Below are positions 18,694 through 37,786 of a DNA stretch of 64,000 nt, piece after piece (the stretch's first letter is position 1; every line of letters starts with the position of its first letter). The position numbers and the translations under genes are program-made. Source of the stretch: Hyaloraphidium curvatum SAG 235-1 (taxonomy: Eukaryota; Fungi; Monoblepharomycota); NCBI GenBank assembly GCA_025558095.1, contig JAIVFI010000016.1, positions 310,001 to 374,000 on the forward strand. Direction: 5' to 3'. The notes beneath the pieces are model-generated. The model was not told the origin of the DNA. It saw nothing but the letters and a program-made list of their open reading frames with translations, and ran no database searches.

Positions 18694-21080
<2,387 letters not shown>

Positions 21081-21181
21081 TGGACGGAATCCTTGAAGCT
21101 GCAATCACTTGCTTGTATTTTTGGCTTATACATCGGTCCCCTTGGGCGATCGGAACTCGATGCCATCTTGGGACCGACATT

Positions 21182-22498
21182 CTACTTCAGCTCGCCGCTC
21201 GCGGAGATCACGATGCGCTTCTTGGTCTTGCCCGACTGGGAACCAAGGGCCTCGATCTTGTTGACCACGTCCATGCCCTCGGTGACGCTGCCGCTGTGTG
21301 CCAAAAACGGTCAGCACGACGACACCATTGCCATCTCGGGACATACAAAACGACGTGCTTGCCATCTAGTTTACGAGGCAGCGTTAGTATAGTCTGGTTC
21401 GATGCTCCGACAAGTGCCCAAATACCCACCAAGCCAGGGAGTAGACACGGTGCAAATAAAGAACTGTGACCCGTTCGTGTTGGGCCCCGCGTTGGCCATC
21501 GAAAGGATGCCGGGCCCGGTGTGCTTCAGAGTGAAGTTCTGTTGCGGAAGCTGTGAGCATGGACCGAACAGCATCTCCCGTTCGTGCTCGAACCTCGTCG
21601 GCGAACTGCAGACTGAGTCAGAATGATGTCAGCAAACTTAAAGAACGCGGACCCACCTTGTTACCGTAGATGCTCTAAGCCACCACGGGGTGCTATGAGT
21701 AACCCAAACAGCCAACCAGAGTAGATGAGACAAACCTTTCCGCCGGTTCTAGTAAGGGACGGATTGGTTCAAACGGCGGTAAACCCCTCGTGACAGACTC
21801 ACTCACCCGTTGTGGTTCGTGAAATCACCTCCCTGTAGAAGCGCTTTCGGGTCAACGGGACCTCCCGAAAGCACGCCTAGATCCAACCTGAAGCATGAAC
21901 TGCGGGATCACACGGTGGAAGGTCGACCCCTGGTATCCGAAGCCCTTCTCGCCGGTGCAGAGGGCGCGCTGGCTCTTCACATCAGACTCGTCGCAGCAAG
22001 AGAAGACGCGATACTCACGAAGCTGGAACGTCAACGATGCCACGGAGTTATGACTCGTCAACATAACGGTCAACGGATGACCCTGGATCACGTACTCTGC
22101 ACAGGGATCGATCGTAGATTAGATGGGAAGGGGGCGATTGACCCGAATAACTCACTCTCCGCCGTCTTCGGGGTGACATCGGAGCGCAGCTTGAGGAGAG
22201 ACGCGTTCAGACGACCTCAGCAAGACGTCCGCCACGCGCATCCTGACCTCCATCACGATGCGACCGAGCGGAGCTCCATCGGCAGTCACGTCAAAGAACA
22301 CTGATCGCGTGATGGCGAGGCGAGGTCACCGAAGGTGGTCCGGTTCAGACGAACAGGGTCCATCGCATCAAAACCGCGGAGAAGCAGTCAGAGCGCGCAG
22401 GACAGTTGAGGCAAAGATTCAAATCCACCCTTGGGCTTGGACATGGCGGCGGAATAAGCGCGGACGAAAGGGGCGACGCGAGTGGAAGCGCGGAACAT
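21182..22498 (-). CDS. Cyclophilin A/D-type peptidyl-prolyl isomerase with an 18-aa mitochondrial-type presequence and a second in-frame ATG at 22444; 12 introns with microexons of 1, 4, 12, 13, 18 and 19 nt
   Basis: Spliced product: [183 protein letters not shown]. Confidence 0.95.
22096..22096 (-). other. Single-nucleotide exon (A) of the cyclophilin gene
   Basis: The minus strand reads ...tgtgcag|A|gtacgt... between introns 22155-22097 and 22095-22023. It is required to build AAC (Asn) in KTAENFRAL. Confidence 0.85.
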
Positions 22499-22575: not shown

Positions 22576-25500
22576 CTACACCGCGGCGAGCAGGGCTACT
22601 CCTCGCTCTACCCAATGGTCCGGCGGCATCGACGTGCGCAGCTCGACCTCCATCACGAAGTTCTGATCCGTTCTGCGCGGGCTGGCACCAATCGACGTGT
22701 CAGAGCAGACATCACGAGGCTTGTTGGAGGACTCACCGCTTGTACACCGGGCACCTGTAGACTTTGGGATCGGGTTCCGCGGTCGACACGGTGCAACCGA
22801 CCAGCACAACAGGCAAGGCGGTGTGTATGACCTTTGGAAGGCTTTCGCACAGGCTGGCGGGGTTTTCAGTCCGGCTGCCATCCTGCACAGGCAGCGCGAC
22901 ACTTACCGGCCGGATCGCTTGTCGAAGCCTGCACCTTCCAGCTGCAAACCGCACACGTACACGCCCTCGGGCGGGGGTCCCGTGATCTCTTCCTTCATCT
23001 GCTTGGTCACTTCGGTGGTGAGCTGGGGAACTGGTCAGCTCAATCCCGTGCACGTTTTGCCGCCGACGAACCTTCACCAAGTCGAGCGCCCATCCGTCAT
23101 GCTGCCGAGTCATCTCCTGCTTCACACCGGTGAGGAAGCCCACGGGATTGAAGAAGAGGCCGATGTTGTAGCAGGCAGGGCGCCCGTCTTGAAGCCAAGC
23201 CTGGAGCTGTGCAGTCCTGTTCGAGCGAAAATTTAGGACAACGAATGAAGGAGAGCCAGGCAATGGGACTACCTCTGGGTGAGCTCCATGAACCACGATC
23301 CCAGTCCAGCGCTCTCCCAAGACACGCGGAGCCAGCTCGGCGGTGTTTTGGCATCAAAAAGGGCGTCAAGGACCTGCTGGATGGGTGTGCTGAGCACGAT
23401 GACACCCTCGATGGCGAGCTTCAGGTCTTTCAAGCTTGAGCGGACCAGCGAAAGGACAGCTTGCAACCGGCTGATTTCTTGAGAAAGGAATATCGTAAGG
23501 GGCTTGGTGGCCCCTTGTTTCTGCAATCCAGTCTTCACTGCAGCTGGCTGGAAGTCATTGGGCAGCTTGGATACCAGATCATTGAGAATGTCCAAGACTG
23601 CCTCCTCTCGGGTCTTGCCAGACGATCCTACGTTGTCTTTTGGCTGAATCTCCCTGTGCAGCCGAAAAGGGTGAGCCGGAGATCCGCTCCGCACCTGACA
23701 TGCACCCTACAAGACTTTCCCGAGAAGATCATTGCTCTCCTTCAGTGAGAAGGCCATATCAGCATTGGAATGCAGACCAAACACTTCCGTGGAGTCCAAC
23801 AGTGGCATGGCCTCGATGTTCTTGCGGAAGGTCAATATCTCCCTGCAGTCCAGGTCAGTGCTCAATCCATATGTACCACCGACCGCCATGGATGCATACT
23901 CTGCAGATGATGAGATCTGGTAGCCTGGTGCAACTGCATAGCTCGTGGCCATGGTGAAGTCTCCAAAGAGCTTGGTGCCATAGGTGTTGAGCAACCGCCT
24001 GTCATAATCATCTGTCACCCTGCCTCCATAGAACACCTCACAGATCATGTAACGGATGGTCTGAAGGGAGCAAGTAAGAGGTTACTCATATGAACAGGTG
24101 TGCCTGTGCTGCAGTAGAGGAACCTACGGCCCAATCAACAGTTCCCTTGGGTGGAAGTTCATCGAAGTGCGTCTGAACAAAAAGGATGCTAGCTGCAAGA
24201 TCAGCCTGGTTGAACTCGTACTGGTGGAAGCGGGAAGGAACAGATCCAGCTCACTGTGTACAAACTTTCACTGGGAGCTTTGCTTACTGGAATAGCCCAT
24301 CCAAGTGGTCCAAACTTCCTCCGTTCCTGGATAATGGAATGCAGGAATGCAACAGAGCACAGCGTTGGCTTGTACTGGGGCCTGGGGCTAATGTCCAGAG
24401 CATCTTGAGTCAGAGTCTGGAAAGTCCTCTGCAGACCAGCCCGGAGGCCCTGGGGTGCTTCACAAGTAAACTTGAGGGATCTATGCAGCAAGTCCGCCGG
24501 GAAGGCTGGGTTGGCTTCTGTTGTGATCCAAAGACGGAAGTTCTCGTTGACAGGGCTTGCAGTAGCAAGCAAGGGGCCGATCTCCTGCATGAACTGGATT
24601 CCAAGGTGGCAATTCTGTAAGAGAACCCAACCACCTGATTGCATCATGGCAGAAAGGATCCTGCGTGCGTGAATCTAGTGCAGATGTTTGCAGGGAAGGG
24701 AAGGAGTGAGATACTTGAAAGGGTGTTCCTGAGATCCAACTCACCTCCTGTCCTTGACCCATGGAGATGGCTTTGATCTCCATTCTCATCCTTTTGCTGA
24801 GTGCCTCGATGTCGGATGATGGATCTGCTCCGGGTGAAAGCAAGCCAATCAAAGGTGTCTCGGGCCTGGACTCCCCAAGTAGAGCCTCCAGTTCAAGCAC
24901 TTGAGATGTAATGTAGTGTGAACCCTGGGCAAAAACTTTAGCTCGGGCCAGACCTCTGCAGCCGGAAGTCTGACCATGGAAGACTCGACGTACTGCTTTG
25001 CTGCAGCTATGGTCCTGTCTGGAGAGAACGACCGAACAAGCACAAACTTTTGAAAGGGCGTGAGAGCTGCAAGGGCAGAGCCAGGAAATGCATCGCTTTC
25101 TGGAGAGTCACGCTCAAGCCACATGCGCCATGACTTCTCGTTCTTGATGACGAGTCCAAGAAGGTCCGCAAACTGAGGCAGCTTGCTCAAAGCAACCAAG
25201 TTCAGCCAGGTAACGTCTGAAGGATCATGAGCTTAACACAACGCTATGCAAGCAGTCCCTCTCACCCTGAATCCAGGTATAGGGTTTCTTCACCACGGCA
25301 TTGATGTCCAGTGCGGCTCCTCCCCGGAGCAGCAAGTAGAACTCTTCAAAGGAGACGGTTCCCATAGCAAGATCCCGCTTGATTGCAAGTAGAAATGTGA
25401 AGAGCAGCTTGTCACGTTCGTAAAGCCCTCTGAGAATATATCTGTGTGTGCTCCGTGTAAGGTCGTCCAAAATGCCAGCAACCCGCTTTGTGGTGACTGG

Positions 25501-28500
25501 TGAAGCTGCACTGTGATCCATAGAGCCGTCAAAGAGTTGCATGAATTGGTGCAGCGAGACCTGGTACATTGGATTGATCCCAGCCATGTCCGCAATGATG
25601 GAGAACAGAATGCTACCCTGGGTTGCAACAGGTCTGTAGTCTTCTCGAGCTTCAGTAATCTTGACCTGAGTTTGCACAGCCGTTTTCAGCTTCTCCTGCA
25701 CATCCTCGGATGCTGTCTTGGATTTTGCAAGCACGTCAACCAAAGATGAATCATCAACCAGGGATCCTTGGGTGCTGGAAAGACGTTCAAGGAGGTTGTC
25801 TTCGAGGTCCTTCAGCATCTGCTTATTCCTGCTGATCTCCTCAAGAAGTTTCGTCCGTTCTGTCTCCAACTCTTGCCTCTCATGCAAAATGACACGTCCA
25901 AGAAGCTGTTCTTCCAATCCCTTCGTGGTTACTGCAAAATCAACAACCAGGCACCTGGCAAAAGACTCTGGTGGAAGCTGCGGATTGGGCAGCTTCGTCA
26001 GCAGCACCACAGTAGCACCACCTTGAGGCCATTCCAGTTGCTTGTCACAGAAGTTGACAACGAATCCTCGTCCAACTTTGATCAGGTTTCTGTCCAAAAT
26101 GTCGTTCAGGGACGAATCAATGTCATCGGTGCAATCCTCAATGATCAGAGGAGTATTGGCAGCCAGTGCCGCTTCAACGTCCAGTCTGAACGTCTTTGCC
26201 ACAGTGGTTGTCCATCTAGCAGCTGGGAGATGCTTCAACATCCACCTCTTGGCCTGCCCTTGCGGGTCAATTATGAAAGGGAACTTCGGGCCGTAAGAAA
26301 CAAGTGCCCCGTTCTGGAGAGAAAGATCGTCTGTTGGGAGCCCTTCCAGAGTCCACTGACTGATTGTGCTTTTGTTCACCAGGAAATCAAGAACTGGAAA
26401 CGGTTTGGCGGGACTGCAAGGAATTCCTGATGCACTCAGATCGTTCTGCCATCTTTCCAGCACTTTTGCTCGGAAAGCCTGGTTGTAGGGCCCGCTGTAA
26501 ACCAAGAATGATGCTGCAAGCAGTGCATCTCCAGCTAGCTTGGTGATGGCATCTTCCAGCGCTTTGTGCTCCTGGATCCAACGGGACTGTTCTCCAGAAA
26601 GGCCACTGATGAGCAAAGATGCGGTGTTCATCTTTGTTTTGCAGACGTCGGCCTCCTGTTGCAATGTTTGCTTGGAGGAAATCGCCTCCATGTACTTGGC
26701 ATTTAGCATGTCAACCTCCGCTTGCTTCTCATCCAGTGTTTGCTGCGCTTTGTTCAAATCCGCAGATGCCTGTGCAAGTCTGTGCTCCTGAACTGCCAGG
26801 TTTGCTTTCAATGGGACCACTTTCTTGTTGATCCAATAGTAGTAGGACATTGCCTTGACCCACGTCGCAAGACCTGCCACGTCAGATGACACCTTTTTGG
26901 CCCCTTCAAGGCTGAAGTCGGGCATGTCAAGGTAGGGTTGAATGAGTTCGATTGTTTCCTCGTTCATTTCGTCCTTGGCAAAGTTCAGCAGTGAAGACAA
27001 GAAATCCGCCTGGCTCATGATTTTCAGTGATTCCCCCCACGAGGGTTTCGGGCAAGGCCTCTCAGGATCCTGTGTCACAGGATCTATCCTCTTGCCCTGC
27101 AGGATGAGGACGCAGTCCATGATCCGCATGATGAGATGGGGTGGCTTTGCCAGCTTCTTTATCGTGGATATGTGTGCAGGCTGGATGGAGTTCAAGGCCA
27201 TGGTTGCCTCTTCCAGGGCCGGTCCTGCAGCAAGCAGCTGCTCCTCAGCAATTTGCTTATCTGCCCGGATGCCGTTGGCAATCTCCTCTGCTACCTTTTT
27301 GACCTGCATCACAGAGTCCTTGACGCTTTCTGCAGCAGCAGTCTTCTGGGTGACATCATTGAGCACCAGGTCTGCCCGTCTTGAAGCTTTGCTGATCTCC
27401 ACTTCCTTCACCGAAAGCTCCACTTGCAGCCCATTGATTGATTCGGAAGCTTCAACAAGCTTTCTCAGGCCGCTGCTCATTCTATCTGCAGCTTGCCGCA
27501 GCTCGGCATGCTTCCTTCCGTAGACAGCCAAGTAGCTTTGGAGGAAGGTGATGAACATTTTTGGTGTGACATGTGTTTTTCTCCGGTATTGTTGGTGATA
27601 GAGTTGTGAGCATTCAACCACGACATCGTGGATGTGGGCAGCATGATGGGCAACGGTCGCCACTGGAATGGAGTCTGCAAGAATAGGGAGCTCCCTCAGA
27701 TAGGTAGATGCAACTGCTTCAAGTGCTGTCATAAAGCGGACTGTCAGGGGCAGAACGGAAGTCACGCTGCAACGTGCTGTACTTGCCTTGTTTTGGCCAT
27801 GCGCTGAGCCATATGAGGTTGCACACGCTGAATAAAGCAGGAAACTTGAGGGAGCGAGTCCTAAATGCAGAATTAACGGGTGAAAAACAGAGCACAATGT
27901 GCAGGTTGCTCTTCACTCGTTCCACAAAGAACTTCCAGACTTGCTCAGGAGAATCCGGAATCGTGGGCTTCTCTTGTTGCATCAAGGGCCTGAGCTCGGA
28001 AATGATTGCAAGCACCTCATCCTTGGGATACAACCCCGGAATGTCACCGGATGTGAGCAGCGCATTTACGAGACCAAGGAAACTCTCCTCCTTGATGTCC
28101 CCATCAGTCATCAAGAATGTGACGCCTTTTCCCTCCAACCCTGTCACCCGGCAGAGGATCTTCAGGTCATCCATCAGATTGGTCAGATTGTAGGTTCGTG
28201 TGACGGCAAGTTGAAACAGTTGGTTTCCAGAGATAAAGCTAGCAAGCTTAGCCAATGATTTCTTTCCAGAGCCTCCAACGCCAACAAGCATTGCACTGGC
28301 ACCGGGGTCGCTAAGAATCCTCGTCAGCTTGCAGATGTTCAAGATGGCATCGTCAAAGAACACCAATTTGAGGCCCGGACCTCTGATGGATGCATTGTAC
28401 TTTTCGAGAAGATCCATTAGCCGTGCCCGTAGGATCTCCATACTTTTTGCTGGCCTGTACAGAACTGGGTCAGCACTTGGTGGTTCGTCCCGTGCCTCAG

Positions 28501-31500
28501 TATCGCCTGATGCTGCATCGTTGGCTGCTGGGAGTGAAGCTTCATTGTTTGTCATGGAAGCTTGGAATGTGCACCAGAGATTTTCCACAGCAAGGCTCTC
28601 CAATGGCAGGTGTTCATTGCTGGCCTCATTCATGCAGGCATGCCATGTGACTGAAAGCTGGCGATCAAACCAGTTTGCATCATCAATCGTCACGAATCTG
28701 TCGCACAGCACCCTTTTGCTCTCATGTGCCCAAAGTTTGAACAGTGTGAGCGGATCAGTTACCACTTCCGAGTTTGCCCGGAGCAAACCCTTCATGATTT
28801 GCCCAAGGTCACGGAGGTTGAATGAGTAGTGGAATTTTGCTGGGGTTGGAAGCATCTTGTCCTTTGTTGCCTGCCACAAATGCTGTGCAAGCTTGGAAAT
28901 GCTGCTGCTTGCTGCCACAACTTCCTCTGCGAATCCATTCGCTGCACTGAAATGTCTAGACATCAAGGTGCTGCAAATTCGATCAAGTGATGCCGGTGCC
29001 GGAATGGGACAGTTGATGACCACGAAATGTCTCTTCAGACGTTCGGGAATGTCGTTTTTGCCACCCCCAGGGAGGGCCATGGCACAGACGAAAGACAGGT
29101 CTTGAATTGCTGTCCATTCCCCTTCAGAGGCTGGGTAAGAGAATGCACAACTTGAACCAGACACCAACATACCTGGTCGATCAAGTGAGAAGAAACCCTG
29201 GTATTCAATGAGCTGCCTCATGATCTCTAGGGTTGGCTGGTCTCCCCACTGGTTGATGTCAGGGATACTGAAGTCATCCAAGAAAATGCACATCCGTTTG
29301 CCATTGGGGGGTCCAAAAGTGTTCCCCATCTTCTTCTCCAAGCTGCTTTCAATCATCTTTTGGAATCCTGATGTGCTTGTTGTCGATGACAATGCAAGCT
29401 GCTTGGAAACGTATTTCTCCGATGTAAGGCCTTCCACGAAGGAATGCAGCATGGTGGTTTTTGCCGTTCCCATCTCTCCAGTGAGAAGAACTGGTTTGTT
29501 CTGTTTGACTAGAATGTCCAGAAGGTACGTCACATTGAGGCTCTCAATGGTTGGCACCAAAGTGCTGTTGCCCAGTGGTGCCTTCAGCTGAGTTCCCCAG
29601 TGTTCCCAGTTGCCGGAGCTGTCCACAAAGTACTCAAAAAGAGTTTGAGAACTCCTGTCCGACATTGTGGGGAAAGGGAGGTGCTCTGCAAAGCTTGTAA
29701 ACAGGAAATCCTGCAGTCGGATCCTCTCTGCATTGTCCAGCATGGATCCAAAAGTCCATGATAGGGCAAACACCAAAACCCGTTCCAAATGATCCCTGTT
29801 GGATGTGGAACCTGTGAGTAGACCGCTCAGAAGCGTTGATAGAGTGTCGAAATAGGCATTGGGTGTCAGGTCCATTTGAGGGTGAAGGGTTTGGACAAGG
29901 TAGCTATGGGTCTTGTCGAAGGTGAGGTTGATGCCTGCTTCCAAGACCTTGGCCTCATCCCTGGTGCGTCCTTTGAGCCACGACTGGAGCAATGCGCCCC
30001 ATGGGAGAACTTGAAGACCAATGTAGATCATTCCGCAGCGAGAGACAGTTGCTGGGCTGGCATTCTTCAAGCTGTGGACCTCAAAAACGAGCTTGCAATT
30101 CTGGGGCAAAGAAAGGCGATCTCCATTTGCCAGGGTCAAGCACTTGTTGTCATCCAGCACACTGTTGAGTGATTCAATCCAGACTGCATCCACAGGACCA
30201 TCCAGCACAATCCAGGTGTACTCGCCCTTGCGCTTCATTGCTCTGCGCCATATTGCCGAGAAAATGCCATCTGTCCAGTCATTGGTTGCAACGTCCAGTT
30301 TTCCAAACATTTGGTAGTCAGTGATGGCTTTGGGGTTCATTCTGATTTCCCTGTGGACTTCTCCACATGCCATCCGCGCTTTAATCAGCACCTGCAAGCA
30401 TGTGGTCTGCAACGGGACCATTGCATCAGAGACAGAGGAGCCACATTTACCACAAGCTTTACCTTGCCAACCCCAGGTGGACCGAGGATCATGAGGCCAT
30501 GGCGAACCAGGGAGCTTTCATGAAACTGCAGAACTTTGCTTGTCCAGGGAGGGTGATCCGTCAAGTTTCGTGCCACAAGCTCCTCTCGGATTTTGCTTTC
30601 CAAGAGATCGTGGGAGGCTCTCTTGCTCTCCACCCCGGGGAACAAGTCATTCAAAAGCGACAAGAATACTTCCGTGTCCTGGTCCACCAGCTTGGACACG
30701 TTCATGTCTCTCAGGACGCGCATGAGGATGGCAACTTCACTCTCTGCTGGGCTTGCACGTTTTGCTGCACCACACGTCCGCAAAACTGACAGAATGTTGC
30801 GGAGGCCAAAGTCATAGTGAACCTGCTTTGAAAGTTGCTCCTCACAGAGTTTGTACAGCATGGAAAACTTCCGTGCAAGCACAATGTTGTTGAGAAAGCC
30901 AGAACCGGCGAGCTTGACACGCATGATAATCTGCCTGTCTGGCACCTGACAAAGGCACGTTGCATGTTGGATCTCTGGAGATCAAAAGCAGAACGTTCAC
31001 CTACCATCATGGCAACGTAGCGGAAGTTGGTCTTGAGATTCTCCGGCAACTCCACACGACCAGCGTAGCCCGGATTCATAGTGATGAAGATGCCAAAGTC
31101 TGGATTGAGCTCCACAGTCTCCCCATCAGTGAAAGTAAAGGCCTTCTTTCGTTCCCTCCGTGCCGAAAGCACACATGCAATCTGCTGGGCAGCAACAGAG
31201 AGAACTGGAAGCTCAATGCGGTTGAATTCGTCAAAGTCACCCCAGCATCCGCTTTGCGCAAGGCCCTTGAAGATTCGCCCCAAGCCTCTGTAGTCCATTT
31301 GATCTGAGCAATTGAAGACAACAACCCATTTTCCAAGTGCCTTGCCCATGTCCTTCACAGTCTCCGTCTTGCCTGTGCCAGCTGGTCCAGCAGGTGACCC
31401 ACCAAGAGACATCCCCAAGGCCTGAGCCAGAGTGATGTAACAACGATCCGTCAGAGGTGTGATGGCAAGACGGTCACTGCAACCAAGGTATTCACAACCG

Positions 31501-34500
31501 TACTTGAAGTCGAAATTGGTGATCTGGGCAAAGCAACAGCTCTTGGTGGGGTCCCAGTAAAAGCGGCATTGCTTGAGCCAGTCAAAGCTCCCTGGAGATT
31601 TGCACTGCGACTTGATCAGGTTTTCACACACATCCCTGTGGTGCACCTGGATGGTGATGAATGTCTCGTATTTTGTCCTTTCCATGGGCATCAGCTCTTT
31701 TGTGGTGATTTCAATGAGCGAATTCAACAGATCTGTCACTCCTTGGAGAGATGCAGTGAGTTTCTTCCTGTCCCCTTTCGAACTGACGAGGGCATCTTCC
31801 ACCAGAGCAGTGAAGAAGATTTGAAGGATGACAATTCCAACTTGGGCTGGGTAAGCAGCCAGAATTTCAAGCAATGGCACCATTGAAAGCTTCATGACTG
31901 CTTCCCCAATAATGTGATTGACCGTAGTTTGGACTGCTTCCAAGAGCTTTCCAAGCCATAACTCAACGTTACCAACTGCCTGGCAAGGTTGGCTGAGGGG
32001 TACCTTTTCCCCTTCACCTGACTCCATTGCTACAATTTGGTTGTAGTCCTTATCATGGAACTGAACCGAGAACACATTGTCAAAAACGTTGCGAAGGTGC
32101 GGCTGGATGGTGTGTGAGTCACTTGCTTGGCCCAGAATCTCAAGGAGAGTAGGGTCGGAAACAAAGTAGAAGCGAGGAAATATGCTCCTCTTTGATTCAA
32201 GGTATCCGCTGAGTGACTTCTGGCAGATTTCCAGCTGTTCCATGAGCTGAGGGATCAGGGTGCGTATCGTTTCACTGGCAGCACAGCAAGCCAGAACATT
32301 TGGGTTCTCTGCCACTGTGGCCATGATCTTACACCATGATTTGTCCACCCCCGCAAACCTCTTGGCCTCCTTTGGGAGCTGTTTTGCAATGTCACCGCCC
32401 ACAAAGACCGCCTCAAGATAGATCCACAAATTTTGCAGTGCAACCCATTGCTCAACTGTCTCGGAAGTAATTGACAGCTGATGCACCCATTGTGCTATTT
32501 CGTCCTTGAACGGCCCATTGTATCTGTTGGAAGATAGAGAGCTGAGGAGCATCAAGCTGTCTTCCATGTCCGTCATCATCAGCACAATGACAGATGACTT
32601 GAGGATGATGTCCCCTCGTGTCTTGAAGGGGGCAAGGCTGAAGCTGCGTGAGTTCCACATGTTTGCCAGTGATTCGAGCTTGCTCTGAATGTCAGCCTCC
32701 TTCACAGCGGCATTACAGACGTCCTCAACATCCTCTGCCTGATTGACCAACGATTCGCAAATCAAGGACCGGAGCTCTACCTTCTCACCAGCAGCCACTT
32801 TCTCGCGGATTCCGGGCACCACTGTGGAGAGCCTGTCCCAGTGCCGTTTCTTCACCGATTTGTTGCACAAGAGTTCCAGAAGCGGAACAGCATGGCAGAA
32901 CAAGTCCACTCGCTCCTTCAGGACATTGAAAACCGACCATCCTTGAATGGAGCTTGGAAGCTTTTCAAATCGGTCCTTGAACGATTCTATGTCCTTTGAA
33001 AGGCTCGTTAGATCTGTGTCATCCAGTGAAGCCGTCAAGCTGTTGTGTCTGGCTGTGATGTCCACGAAAAGTGCGTAAGCTGTTTGAAGATGCTTCAGGT
33101 CCGTCTTGATAGCAGCCATGCGTGGCAGGTGAAGAGGCGGAAGAGCAAAGAGAGCAAGGGCAGCACTGTAGCTCTGGCTCTTTTGGTCCAAGTCGTTGAA
33201 CTGCAATTGAACTGTCTTCAGCACTTCAATGTGTGCTTTCCACACTGATTCGTCAGATTCAGCAGCACCACCCTGCAGGGGTGACATCAGGTTCCGATAG
33301 CTTGTGGCAAAGTCCGTTGCGCCTTTCACAAAGTGCTCCACAGCCTGGACCAGCTCCGCCTTGAATTTTGGTTGAACACGGTGCAGCTTTCCTTGAAGCT
33401 CCGATGCCGATGCCCGCAGCTTCTGCAAAGAGTATTGAACTGAATCCACCAACTCGCTTTCTTCCTTGGTCACTTTGATGCCATGCTTCACTAAGCTGGA
33501 GTAGATGTCCTCAATTGGTGCCAACTGGAATTCCATGTCAATCTCCTGGTCCCTGATTTCATTGAGAATTGACACTGCATAGTGGAGTTCCTCAATGCCA
33601 GAGACGTCGTGTTGCATGGCATCCTGTTTGTTGCGAATGAATGCCGTCAGTCCTTGCAAAGCATCCCGTACGTGGTGCTTGAGCTTCTGCCCTATTGCGT
33701 TGAGCTGGTTCTGTGCTCTTTCCAAGACAGCAGATCTTGCGGAACTCAAATCAAGCATAAAAGCACCAGCACTGACAGACAAAGGCATTGATTGCGCAAT
33801 GTGTTGCTTCACCTCACTCAACAGCGAGAGTTCTTCGAGGAGGGCTTCCGGTCTGCTGGTGCTGATGTCTGCATTCCTAGAACTGACCAAGGAGTCCCAG
33901 CGCCTTGCTGAAATAAGCTGATGCTCAAGGTTTTTTGCAGAGTGAGCCAGTGATTCTGCAATCAATGTCACAAGCTTTGCAAGCTCTCGATTGGACGAGG
34001 TTTCTTCCAGATGCTGCTCCAATGTAGTCAAAACACTGGAACTGCCGACAGACTGTTCCTCTCCTGTTGATTCAGTCTGCTGACTGGTATGATTCTTCTC
34101 TGAAAGCAACGAGCTCTGCAACGTGCGCTGCAAATCTGCCCATGGCTTTTGCGATTGAACCACCCCACAAATTCCAATGACTTTGGAGCACAAATCTGAC
34201 ACACATCTTTGGAAGTCCCAAAGTGGCGGTTCAAATGCAAGTACTCCTTGCCCACCAAACAGAAGTTGGCATTGAAAAACTGGCTTACCCATGTCTCCGG
34301 TATTGGGTCCGTCAGGCACACCCCCAAGACCCAGAGAAGTGCGCAGTTGCTCCAAAGCATTTCGGAGGCACATGAGCAAGTTCCGCCCCAGATGGCTGGC
34401 TACTTCCTCATAGTAGACCCTGAAAACCTCCACACCGTCGGCCATTCTCTCCCTCGGCATGGCGTCTTGTACGGACTGTAAAAAGCTCATGAGATGTGCC

Positions 34501-37500
34501 TCAATTGCTTGGCAGGTTTCGGCAATATCCTTAGTTCCAGCCTCAATCATGTGGCTTGCATCCTCTACCATCTGCTGCAAAGTGCGAGGAACAATTGCTT
34601 GCTGTTGCATAGGCAACAGGGCGATTGAAGCAATTCTGTCACTAAGTGGAAGGAGGTGTCGAGCTGCAATGCCTTGCAGGTGGTTTGCATGCAGCTCAGC
34701 AGCATGACAAGAATGTTCCATAGTTTGCAGGAAAGGCTCGAGGTTCAGGGAGGACCTTGCAGATGCAAGTGGTTAGCAAACAGCTACCTATATGAGACAG
34801 CAGCTGGCTTACCACGTGAGGACACTGAAGGCAGGGTGAAGGTGGCGATCCACTGTGGATGCCAGTAAAGCAACTACAGAGCCCATCCCAGTGCCGTTGA
34901 TGCCTTCATTCAACAGGCCCTCTCTTCTGGCAAGAATGGCCTGCAGGCGACTCTGAATCGGCTTTATGCGATGGCACTTGCTTGCAACAAAGACTGCATC
35001 TGGTGGGACAATCATTCCCAGCTTGTCCATCCAAGTCACCTCGAGAACCATGTTGTCAAACTCGGCACTCAGGTTGATGCACACATGTCCTTGTGCATCC
35101 CTGGCAAGAAGGGGCACATGCAATGCTTGGCCAACACGCTTCACAGATTGCACCCAATGATCGTGCCACAAGAGCTGGTACTCCAACAGTGCACGTGTAA
35201 GGATATTGTAGTGTTGCAGCTTCATTGCATTGTCTGGGTGATCAAGAAGAGCAGGCACAGAGGCAAAGAACTTCATGGGTTCCTCAACTGAATGCAGCAG
35301 CTGACCGGCCCAAGCAATAGCACCCGATGCCTCAGGCATGTGCCAAGGAATTGGGGGACTGTCCTTTGCCCTCTGATACAGGCGTCTTGTTGCTTCAAGA
35401 TCATTTGCAATGAAGTGTGAGAACAAACCAGCAGCCAAAGCATCAATGCCGAGGTTCAGCTTGGGAATTGAGGCAAACCGTTCAAGGACTTCTATGCCGG
35501 CTTGAGTGTTGGTGCAAGACGCAAGTGTTGTAGCCAGAAGGCCTCTAGCCTGATCTTCTGCCTGCCTGGCAGCTTCCAGCAACTTGTTGTGCGATTCCTC
35601 GAATCCCTAATGCAAGATTCAGCACAGCATCCATGAACTAGGGAGTGTGGCTTACATGGTCATCAGTATTGAGGGGATCCAGGTGCAGCTGCTGGACGGA
35701 AGATAGAGCACTGTCGAATGCCTTGCAAACCATGGGCAATCGCGGATCGGCATCCTTCAGCTGCTGGAAAGCCTCTTTCCAGTCCAGAATGACCAAAAGT
35801 GCATTCAGCCGGCGACAGAAAGCATCAAGCTTTCCAAAGACGTGCTTGGTGCTAATCTCTGGTGGTTGTGCAATGAATGACTGGATTTTCAGCTGATGAT
35901 TTGGCATTAGCCCAAGCCCCTAGGCTTCGCAACAAAGAAGCGTGCCTTCATTTCTTCAAAGGTACTTTGGAAGGAGTCCCTTAGCCTAAGGCACACTTGG
36001 AGCTTGCCTCTAGCTTCATCAGAATCCAGGGTCCAAAAGCTGTGGTCTACACCCTGCTGGTGTTGGTGGTCAGTGAGCATTATTAGCTAGAACCTGATTG
36101 TCAAAAATCCTTGCCTTTAGGACATGTCCATGGCAGCAGCGAACCATCTGGTTTGCAATCTTGACAAGCAGTGATGTGATGCGTTCAGAAGCATGTGTCC
36201 CGGTTGAGAGCCTGTGAACAGACGCTCAGAGTGGGCCCTGCCAAACCGACAAGAAGGACACAAACATCATGAGCATCTTCACAGCCTCAACAATGCCTGG
36301 AATGTAGTCCATGACTATCTCAGGATCAGTCTGGTATAGGCACTGGATGTTGCTCTCCATGGCCAGAAGGTATCGCAGGTTTTCCTGGCAATGGCAAGTC
36401 TTAGCATGATTCAAGGCAACAGAATTGGGACCCACATTTGCAATCTTTGACTCCTCCCCGATACGATCTATGAGGTGCTGAAGTGGCGCGCACTTTGCAG
36501 AGCCGCAAGCCTTGAGAATGCTGATGACCAGGGAAACCTCCTTGATGCTCAGTGCCTGGACGAGCTGGCTGTACTTGACCATTTGGAACTTCCAGTGCTG
36601 CAGCTCTGCATTTGGTCCCACATCCCCCACATCCTTCCGGATTTGATCGCACTGTGTCAGGACCTGTTTTGCCTGGTGGTGCCACTCTGTGCATTTCTCT
36701 GGGTCGAGTGGTTGGCAGACTCAGGAGAAGCAACAGGATTGACACCCACTCTCTAGGTCACTCAGCAGAACTGGGTTCTTCAGCACTTCTTGGTGGCAGC
36801 TGGGATTGCTAAGCCCCGACAGATCTATGGTGCACGGTGCGAGCCGGAACTGCTCTTCTTCGATGCCAAGGAAAGTGAGATTGCTGGAAAAAGCAGCCAG
36901 ATTTGTCGCAAAGGTGGTAGATGCGGCATCGGAGGGAACCGGCCGGATCTGCGGGAGGAAGACATCAGGGACAGGCAAAACGAAGAAAGCCAAAAAAGGA
37001 ACTGCCTTTGCTTGGACAGACGGGCATATGACTTCCGTCAGGTGCATTGTGAGAGCCGGAACTGGGTTGCTGTTGAGGGATCCGTAGCTGAGGCTAGTCT
37101 GAAGGTTCTGGGCGGTTACGCCGGTGCCAGGCATGCGAAGGAAGAAGCACCCCGGGCCAAGCATTGCGCTGGAAAAGGATGCGGTGACAAGCATCACGTT
37201 TTTGTTGAACGCGCCCTTCAATGTGACAAGCTCCTCCTGCCAGCATGGTTAGGTCAGCCGCCATCGCATCCCGCCACGCCAACATGCCTTTGTCGGGGGT
37301 TGCCATAGCAGGAAAAGGCGCTGCGGTCCTTCCTCGCTAAAGAACTCGTTCATTGTTTCGAGCCTCGAGCCGTGCAGGAGCTGGTTCTCAAGCACATCCT
37401 CCCGCTCCTGCACCACGGCCGCGAAGGCCGCCAGTAGGAACCTGTGCCTCGAGTCAAGGGTCTGCCTCCTTTTCTCCAGCAAGCTTGAGTAGCTGGAGGT

Positions 37501-37599
37501 GCCCCCGAGCCCCTTCTTCTTGTCCGCGTCCCACGGGTTCAGCGAGGCCGTCGACCGCAGGTTCTGGAAGCTAGTGCGCAGATTCGCGATGCTGCTCAT
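22576..37599 (-). CDS. Axonemal outer-arm dynein heavy chain, gamma type (DNAH5/DNAH8-like); about 4,500 aa and ~24 introns, apparently intact
   Basis: AAA1 [66 protein letters not shown], typical of the DNAH5/8 subclass. Also AAA2 GPPGVGKT, AAA3 [11 protein letters not shown]4 GVGGSGKKS, stalk [15 protein letters not shown] and C-terminus [18 protein letters not shown]. Every frame change I traced is explained by a GT-AG or GC-AG intron. Confidence 0.93.
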
Positions 37600-37786
37600 C
37601 GTGGCCGGCGCCGGCGCCCGCCGAATGAAAGCGACGGATCTCGAACGGCCCCCGGGGTTCGCGGTCGACGCGGCGCCGAGGCGGAATTGGGCGTGACAGG
37701 GGTGGTTTGCGCAGTCGTGCGTCGCGACGGCTGGCGGCTCGCCCATGCCTTTTCCTCGGCCCCTTGGTCGCCCGCCGCTGCCAGAA

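Follow-up and report, generated by a model that had tools for sequence, protein, structure and literature searches.

The cyclophilin locus

The window (the whole 64,000-nt stretch of Hyaloraphidium curvatum DNA that was analysed) carries fungal-type genes with short introns and an axonemal-type dynein heavy chain gene, and the nearest named match of its PEX1 gene was from the chytrid Kappamyces. The dynein heavy chain gene (about 22577-37700, minus strand) has a GC content of about 0.51 versus 0.60 around it and is syntenic in both of the relatives described below; about 130 nt separate its stop from the start of a cyclophilin gene. The latter encodes a cyclophilin A-type PPIase of 165 aa in 13 exons, and all of its 12 introns are GT-AG (Table 1).

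The gene model was derived from spliced alignment, exon-by-exon Pfam and structure searches, and RNA joints. Three exons matched Pfam PF00160 in order in the exon-wise search, and the best match of exon 11 was to CypD/CypA structure chains. PF00160 extends over the whole protein with no extra domains, as in the single-domain CypA type. Exon 13 had a single match in the genome (31.9-Mb, 55-contig assembly), so an assembled intron-less copy is not the source of the RNA described below; no second or intron-less copy of the gene was found in the assembly. Elsewhere in the genome, two near-identical cyclophilin-domain genes with an intron-less domain lie 22 kb apart (L004 and L005, G000:C15), and a PPIL3-like cyclophilin gene (L011, G000:C5) has a putative 3-nt exon in spliced alignment to a distant reference.

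Table 1. Positions of the cyclophilin and UGPase features in the window.
Feature	Position	Strand	Description	Basis
Cyclophilin gene	22444-21182	-	exons 1-13 of 16, 53, 34, 1, 4, 81, 26, 13, 18, 12, 109, 19 and 112 nt
Exon 3	22156-22189	-	34 nt; ends in GAG (Glu) + A, first base of Asn codon
Intron 3	22097-22155	-	59 nt; GTGAGT..CAG; phase 1
Exon 4	22096	-	single nucleotide A; middle base of Asn codon	RNA joint and unique decomposition
Intron 4	22023-22095	-	73 nt; GTACGT..CAG; phase 2; longest of introns 3-5
Exon 5	22022-22019	-	CTTC; last base of Asn codon + Phe codon	RNA joint and unique decomposition
Intron 5	21969-22018	-	50 nt; GTGAGTAT..CAG; phase 0
Exon 6	21888-21968	-	81 nt; first residue is Arg of the motif	RNA and Pfam
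UGPase (UDP-glucose pyrophosphorylase) gene	18694-21081	+	adjoins the cyclophilin gene
Predicted UGPase 1-nt exon	20717	+	A; introns of 55 and 49 nt on either side	model and spliced alignment

An earlier reading of the sequence alone (the sequence-only reading) had proposed that the Asn-Phe codons of the conserved ENF motif are assembled from a one-base exon and a four-base exon, and the positions of both exons and of the three introns around them were as described there. At 22096 the genomic sequence reads cag-A-gtacgt, a single base between an AG acceptor and a GT donor. Introns 3-5 have complete GT..YAG ends in the unspliced sequence, each with a candidate branch site: CTAAT 26 nt before the 3' end of intron 3, TTGAC at -51, -39 and -12 in intron 4, and CTGAT at about -17 in intron 5. 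Their lengths had been called normal, and they fall within the range that is typical locally, the introns of the cyclophilin and neighbouring UGPase genes measuring 47-73 nt, with one of 128 nt and a median of 55 nt. Among the 28 introns scored, the donors of introns 3-5 were among the better intronic matches to U1; the donor of intron 5 was the best, and intron 4 had the weakest U1 pairing of the three.

RNA across the one- and four-base exons

In a spliced contig of run X1, position 22156 was joined to 21968 with five letters between them. These were GAAGT on the plus strand, that is, A + CTTC on the gene strand, and the mRNA junction encoding ENF that the sequence-only reading had predicted was found. 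The contig had a depth of 16397, and the depth bins at 21988-22115 were empty. The remaining small exons (13, 18, 12 and 19 nt) were joined at the predicted places in the same run. The RNA evidence comes from the assembled contigs of the one public run that contained the region, from one study, an assembly in which rare forms are dropped; the run was labelled as RNA by guess, and its GT-AG joints show that the molecules were spliced.

Nowhere in the skipped 187 nt do the five letters form an uninterrupted string. When GT, GC, AT and GA donors and AG and AC acceptors were allowed, exactly one decomposition reproduced the RNA; a contiguous 5-nt exon or non-canonical donors gave no solution in this search. 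Of 780 in-frame, stop-free splice paths through the region, one gave the exact motif, and this path was also the top-scoring one. The mature mRNA contains both exons, and their sole possible sources are 22096 and 22022-22019. Exon A and the first donor base after it form a second AG, 2 bases past the true acceptor (22096-22095, and likewise 20717-20718 in UGPase); in the cyclophilin RNA the proximal AG of the two at 22096-22095 was used.

The alternative acceptors skipping the A that the sequence-only reading had tried were all said to shift the frame. This needs a small correction, since two alternatives would on paper stay in frame: use of GTTATT at 22151, a weak donor, would give ESDF, and inclusion of the G at 22082 as a 1-nt exon, again before a weak donor, would give ESF. 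The RNA shows ENF. Because such weaker in-frame alternatives exist, the sequence by itself does not prove the exon structure. Skipping of the A, of CTTC or of both leads to a premature stop and a protein ending at 54-63 aa, so both tiny exons are needed for the conserved reading frame. In the contigs of the one run, from which rare variants are dropped, the form including both exons was the only one seen across this region.

A single base is unmappable by its sequence alone, and a collapsed second allele is hard to exclude fully, which leaves room for an untemplated A: a product of non-canonical splicing with base editing, a base from an intron-less copy or allele missing from the assembly, or an assembly error. 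This explanation is hardly credible. The A lies between a CAG with a branch candidate and GTACGT, the introns on both sides are of normal length, and GC, AT and GA donors yielded no other solution. There is one gene copy, and the RNA exons match the locus with no other letters listed. An assembly indel could not account for two extra full introns.

Intron crowding, relatives and other one-base exons

Two syntenic relatives were obtained by walking Logan contigs (SRR26194948 and SRR23967301), and are mutually closer than either is to the H. curvatum window (dynein, 85% versus 76%). Gene order was conserved almost completely over the stretches read; introns in the relatives were mostly longer, and there were fewer of them in cyclophilin and UGPase. 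The two relatives should be useful for studies of intron gain and loss. The cyclophilin comparison used one orthologue, as the copy of the second relative falls between two contigs. This orthologue encodes the same ENF motif contiguously with introns 3-5 all absent, so the protein motif is independent of the split; a conserved ag-A-gt, which had been put forward as a check, was not present in the one orthologue read. It has 7 introns, and 4 of the 12 H. curvatum positions are common to both genes. The positions absent from the relative form runs of neighbours (3-6 and 8-11), and the relative carries private introns in these stretches or close to them. Among metagenome contigs, 49 matches to the ag-A-gt pattern included 0 cyclophilins, and a homologue search with an intron-less cyclophilin paralogue returned no cyclophilin A orthologues.

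The UGPase gene has 16 introns here versus 9 and 8 in the relatives. Two of its positions are absent from both relatives and present in a distant fungus, so the lineage of the relatives lost old introns there. The position of cyclophilin intron 4 (phase 2 of the same Asn codon) is also used by a PPIH-like paralogue (L020, G000:C31). Because of the UGPase losses and this common position, we lean towards old cyclophilin introns that would have been kept here and lost in the relative; a gain of these introns in the H. curvatum lineage is the less likely course in this comparison with one relative. An origin as sister or copied introns (Introner-like or by tandem duplication) was rejected, as introns 3-5 have no mutual similarity: the scores of pairs 3-4, 4-5 and 3-5 were reached by 68%, 18% and 92% of shuffles. 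No clear match of introns 3-5 to coding sequence was found.

With 24 introns per kb the cyclophilin gene stands far outside the range of the 12 other window genes (roughly 4-8 per kb), and UGPase, with 10 per kb, also exceeds it; most intron positions of these 12 genes are common to a relative. No reliable exon below 19 nt was found in these 12 genes when they were aligned to a relative, three of the models having artefactual ends. When 12 introns were placed uniformly in 498 nt, a 1-nt exon arose in 24% of trials and an adjacent pair of 1 and at most 4 nt in 3.4%. At these odds the microexons look like a by-product of crowding in which tiny exons go unpenalised. The occurrence of 1-nt exons in two adjacent genes is somewhat above uniform placement (0.24 x 0.15), a coincidence that was noticed post hoc.

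Retention of introns 4 and 5 together keeps the frame and would give a protein of 206 aa with a 41-aa insertion in the motif, and every skip leads to a premature stop; skipping or retention might in this way tune the cyclophilin level through stops or produce the longer form. Such regulation is highly improbable. In run X1 the bins at 21988-22115 had no contig coverage and a single joint was listed there, the insertion into the conserved motif would be unlikely to fold, and none of introns 3-5 is present in the relative. The tiny exons are probably no more than a consequence of how densely the introns are packed, and nothing pointed to a role in regulation.

A second one-base exon of the window, predicted in UGPase, lies 1.4 kb from the cyclophilin A. 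The predicted UGPase gene needs the A at 20717 as a 1-nt exon; of the two introns around it, the downstream one alone is present in both relatives. In the APC11 gene of this genome (L022, G000:C39, minus strand, ATG 263834), the best-fitting model has a predicted 1-nt exon (G) after coding base 19, with introns of 77 nt before it and 61 nt after it. Plant APC11 has blocks of 19, 1 and 52 with the exon in phase 1 (PMC8831610, Suppl. Table 5), so the predicted 19|1 microexon position is the same here as in land plants. The match may reflect either a very old one-base exon or convergence. VPS55 of this genome has no 1-nt exon.

A genome-wide search for the intron-A-intron motif gave 22 matches versus 65 for the reversed pattern, that is, no excess, which argues against a large dedicated system of 1-nt exons. 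Among the 22 matches the cyclophilin locus alone was convincing, and two others were ordinary introns. As the pattern is estimated from donor frequencies to catch a few per cent of possible 1-nt exons, tens of such exons are possible genome-wide and hundreds unlikely.

Order of intron removal and comparison with known systems

We consider it likely that A and CTTC form a tandem pair of ordinary spliceosomal microexons, constitutively spliced and arising from crowding in a very intron-dense housekeeping gene. Constitutive here describes the major form seen in the contigs. Introns of this length belong to the regime in which the two splice sites pair with each other over the intron; under such intron definition each of the three short introns would be recognised by itself, and exon size would hardly matter. 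Steric exclusion of neighbouring splice-site factors across a tiny exon is established. U1 on the donor of intron 4 would compete for the same few bases with the factors bound to the intron 3 acceptor, and with overlapping footprints introns 3 and 4 would be removed one after the other. The first removal would fuse the tiny exon to its neighbour, so that the next intron then has normal flanks. Introns 3 and 5 do not overlap and could be removed first, leaving intron 4 with normal flanks. Skipping would be disfavoured, as the intron to be removed would have to be 127-187 nt long (versus the usual 47-73 nt) and the product would in every case contain a premature stop.

The order of removal is probably preferred rather than obligatory. 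Our guess, held at a little under even chances, is that the outer introns (5 and 3) would go before the weaker middle intron 4. A strictly downstream-first removal, as often seen in plants, may also apply and is less probable, and removal with no preference at all is doubtful. Consecutive removal of introns around 1-nt exons is a published model in plants (PMC4674806, PMC8831610), where most microexons showed both kinds of intermediate, with a downstream-first bias (PMC8831610).

The sequence-only reading had gone further and proposed that the flanking introns must be removed in a fixed, recursive-like order. That the introns on the two sides of the A are not assembled simultaneously is a sound inference, but the sequence forces no fixed order. 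A stronger form of the proposal would treat the 187-nt stretch as one complex intervening sequence, similar to recursive splicing or a stwintron, with an obligatory order. The splice-site footprints do overlap over the exons of 1 and 4 nt, the U1 duplex of intron 4 is weak, a hairpin is predicted over the branch candidates of this intron, and 20 of 69 plant microexons showed only one kind of intermediate (PMC8831610). However, no splice signal is interrupted by another intron, and removal of intron 3 brings no improvement to the intron 4 donor, whose U1 duplex is hardly altered (-3.4 versus -3.1 kcal/mol). The intron 4 hairpin was no better than in shuffles (z -1.5), the search for RNA structure gave no significant fold, and both intermediates were seen in 49 of the 69 plant microexons (PMC8831610). 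Taken with these points, an obligatory order is distinctly unlikely. A three-intron cassette removed in an obligatory order set by intron-internal features, in a lineage that keeps very old one-base exons, would also be unlikely.

In recursive splicing the ratchet point has zero length, the AG|GT junction regenerates a 5' splice site, and nothing is retained. In a stwintron the donor, branch or acceptor element of an external intron is split by an internal one and comes into being when the latter is removed. The cyclophilin case resembles both in that back-to-back reactions are impossible at once, and differs in that some bases stay in the mRNA as exons and the earlier reaction generates no splice site. 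A ratchet point was ruled out by the one and four bases kept in the mRNA, and a stwintron by the intact GT..YAG ends of all three introns before splicing. The term recursive-like does not fit for the same reasons: the base is retained, no donor is regenerated at AG|GT, and each intron has its own GT, YAG and branch candidate.

Single-nucleotide exons had also been described as very rare, which was overstated, since fungal cases are published (PMC12940212; 13 in Coprinopsis, PMC12230235). The spread of the Asn codon over three exons, to which the sequence-only reading had drawn attention, is present but is expected of any phase-1 one-base exon. The 1-nt exon A333 of Arabidopsis APC11 was proven by base substitution (PMC4674806), and 1-nt exons are conserved in land-plant APC11 and VPS55 (PMC8831610). 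The cyclophilin exon is like these in its phase 1, its need for frame, its GT-AG introns, and an intron definition that would involve consecutive removal. In plant APC11 the exons on either side are of normal size and the upstream intron is longer, whereas here the CTTC exon comes next and five coding bases are surrounded by three introns of 50-73 nt. Proof in the plant case came from substitution, in the cyclophilin case from the mRNA junction alone.

The one-nucleotide exon of Fusarium CYP621A is supported by RNA reads (PMC12940212). Both it and the cyclophilin A are fungal and RNA-confirmed, lie between short introns, provide the central base of a codon within a conserved motif, and have an intron-less relative as a length marker. 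The Fusarium exon occurs in about 20 orthologues and is rarely expressed, whereas the cyclophilin exon belongs to a housekeeping gene, is paired with a second microexon and was absent from the one orthologue read. In Coprinopsis cinerea 13 microexons of 1 nt, 57 of 2 nt and 27 of 3 nt have been reported (PMC12230235). Both fungi are intron-rich with short introns; Coprinopsis, a basidiomycete, has dozens of genes with exons of 1-3 nt. Adjacent microexons of 5 and 12 nt are known in rice. No report of microexons in a cyclophilin or in a zoosporic or chytrid fungus was found in the literature.

One-base exons are thus a kind already known, and no new mechanism or protein function is revealed; the unusual part is the 1 + 4 packing, with three introns around five coding bases. 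With this locus, an early-diverging fungus joins the cases in which a one-base exon has RNA support. It indicates that exons can be almost arbitrarily small where introns are short and define themselves, and standard pipelines will mis-annotate genes with such exons. The 187-nt unit offers a compact substrate for the order in which overlapping splice sites are used; if the obligatory cassette were true, it would be a minimal natural test of the steric limit of the spliceosome, and, with old exons, one-base exons would be able to persist since the plant-fungus split. The APC11 observation may matter more: if borne out by RNA and by further lineages, it would take the age of a one-base exon back to that split.
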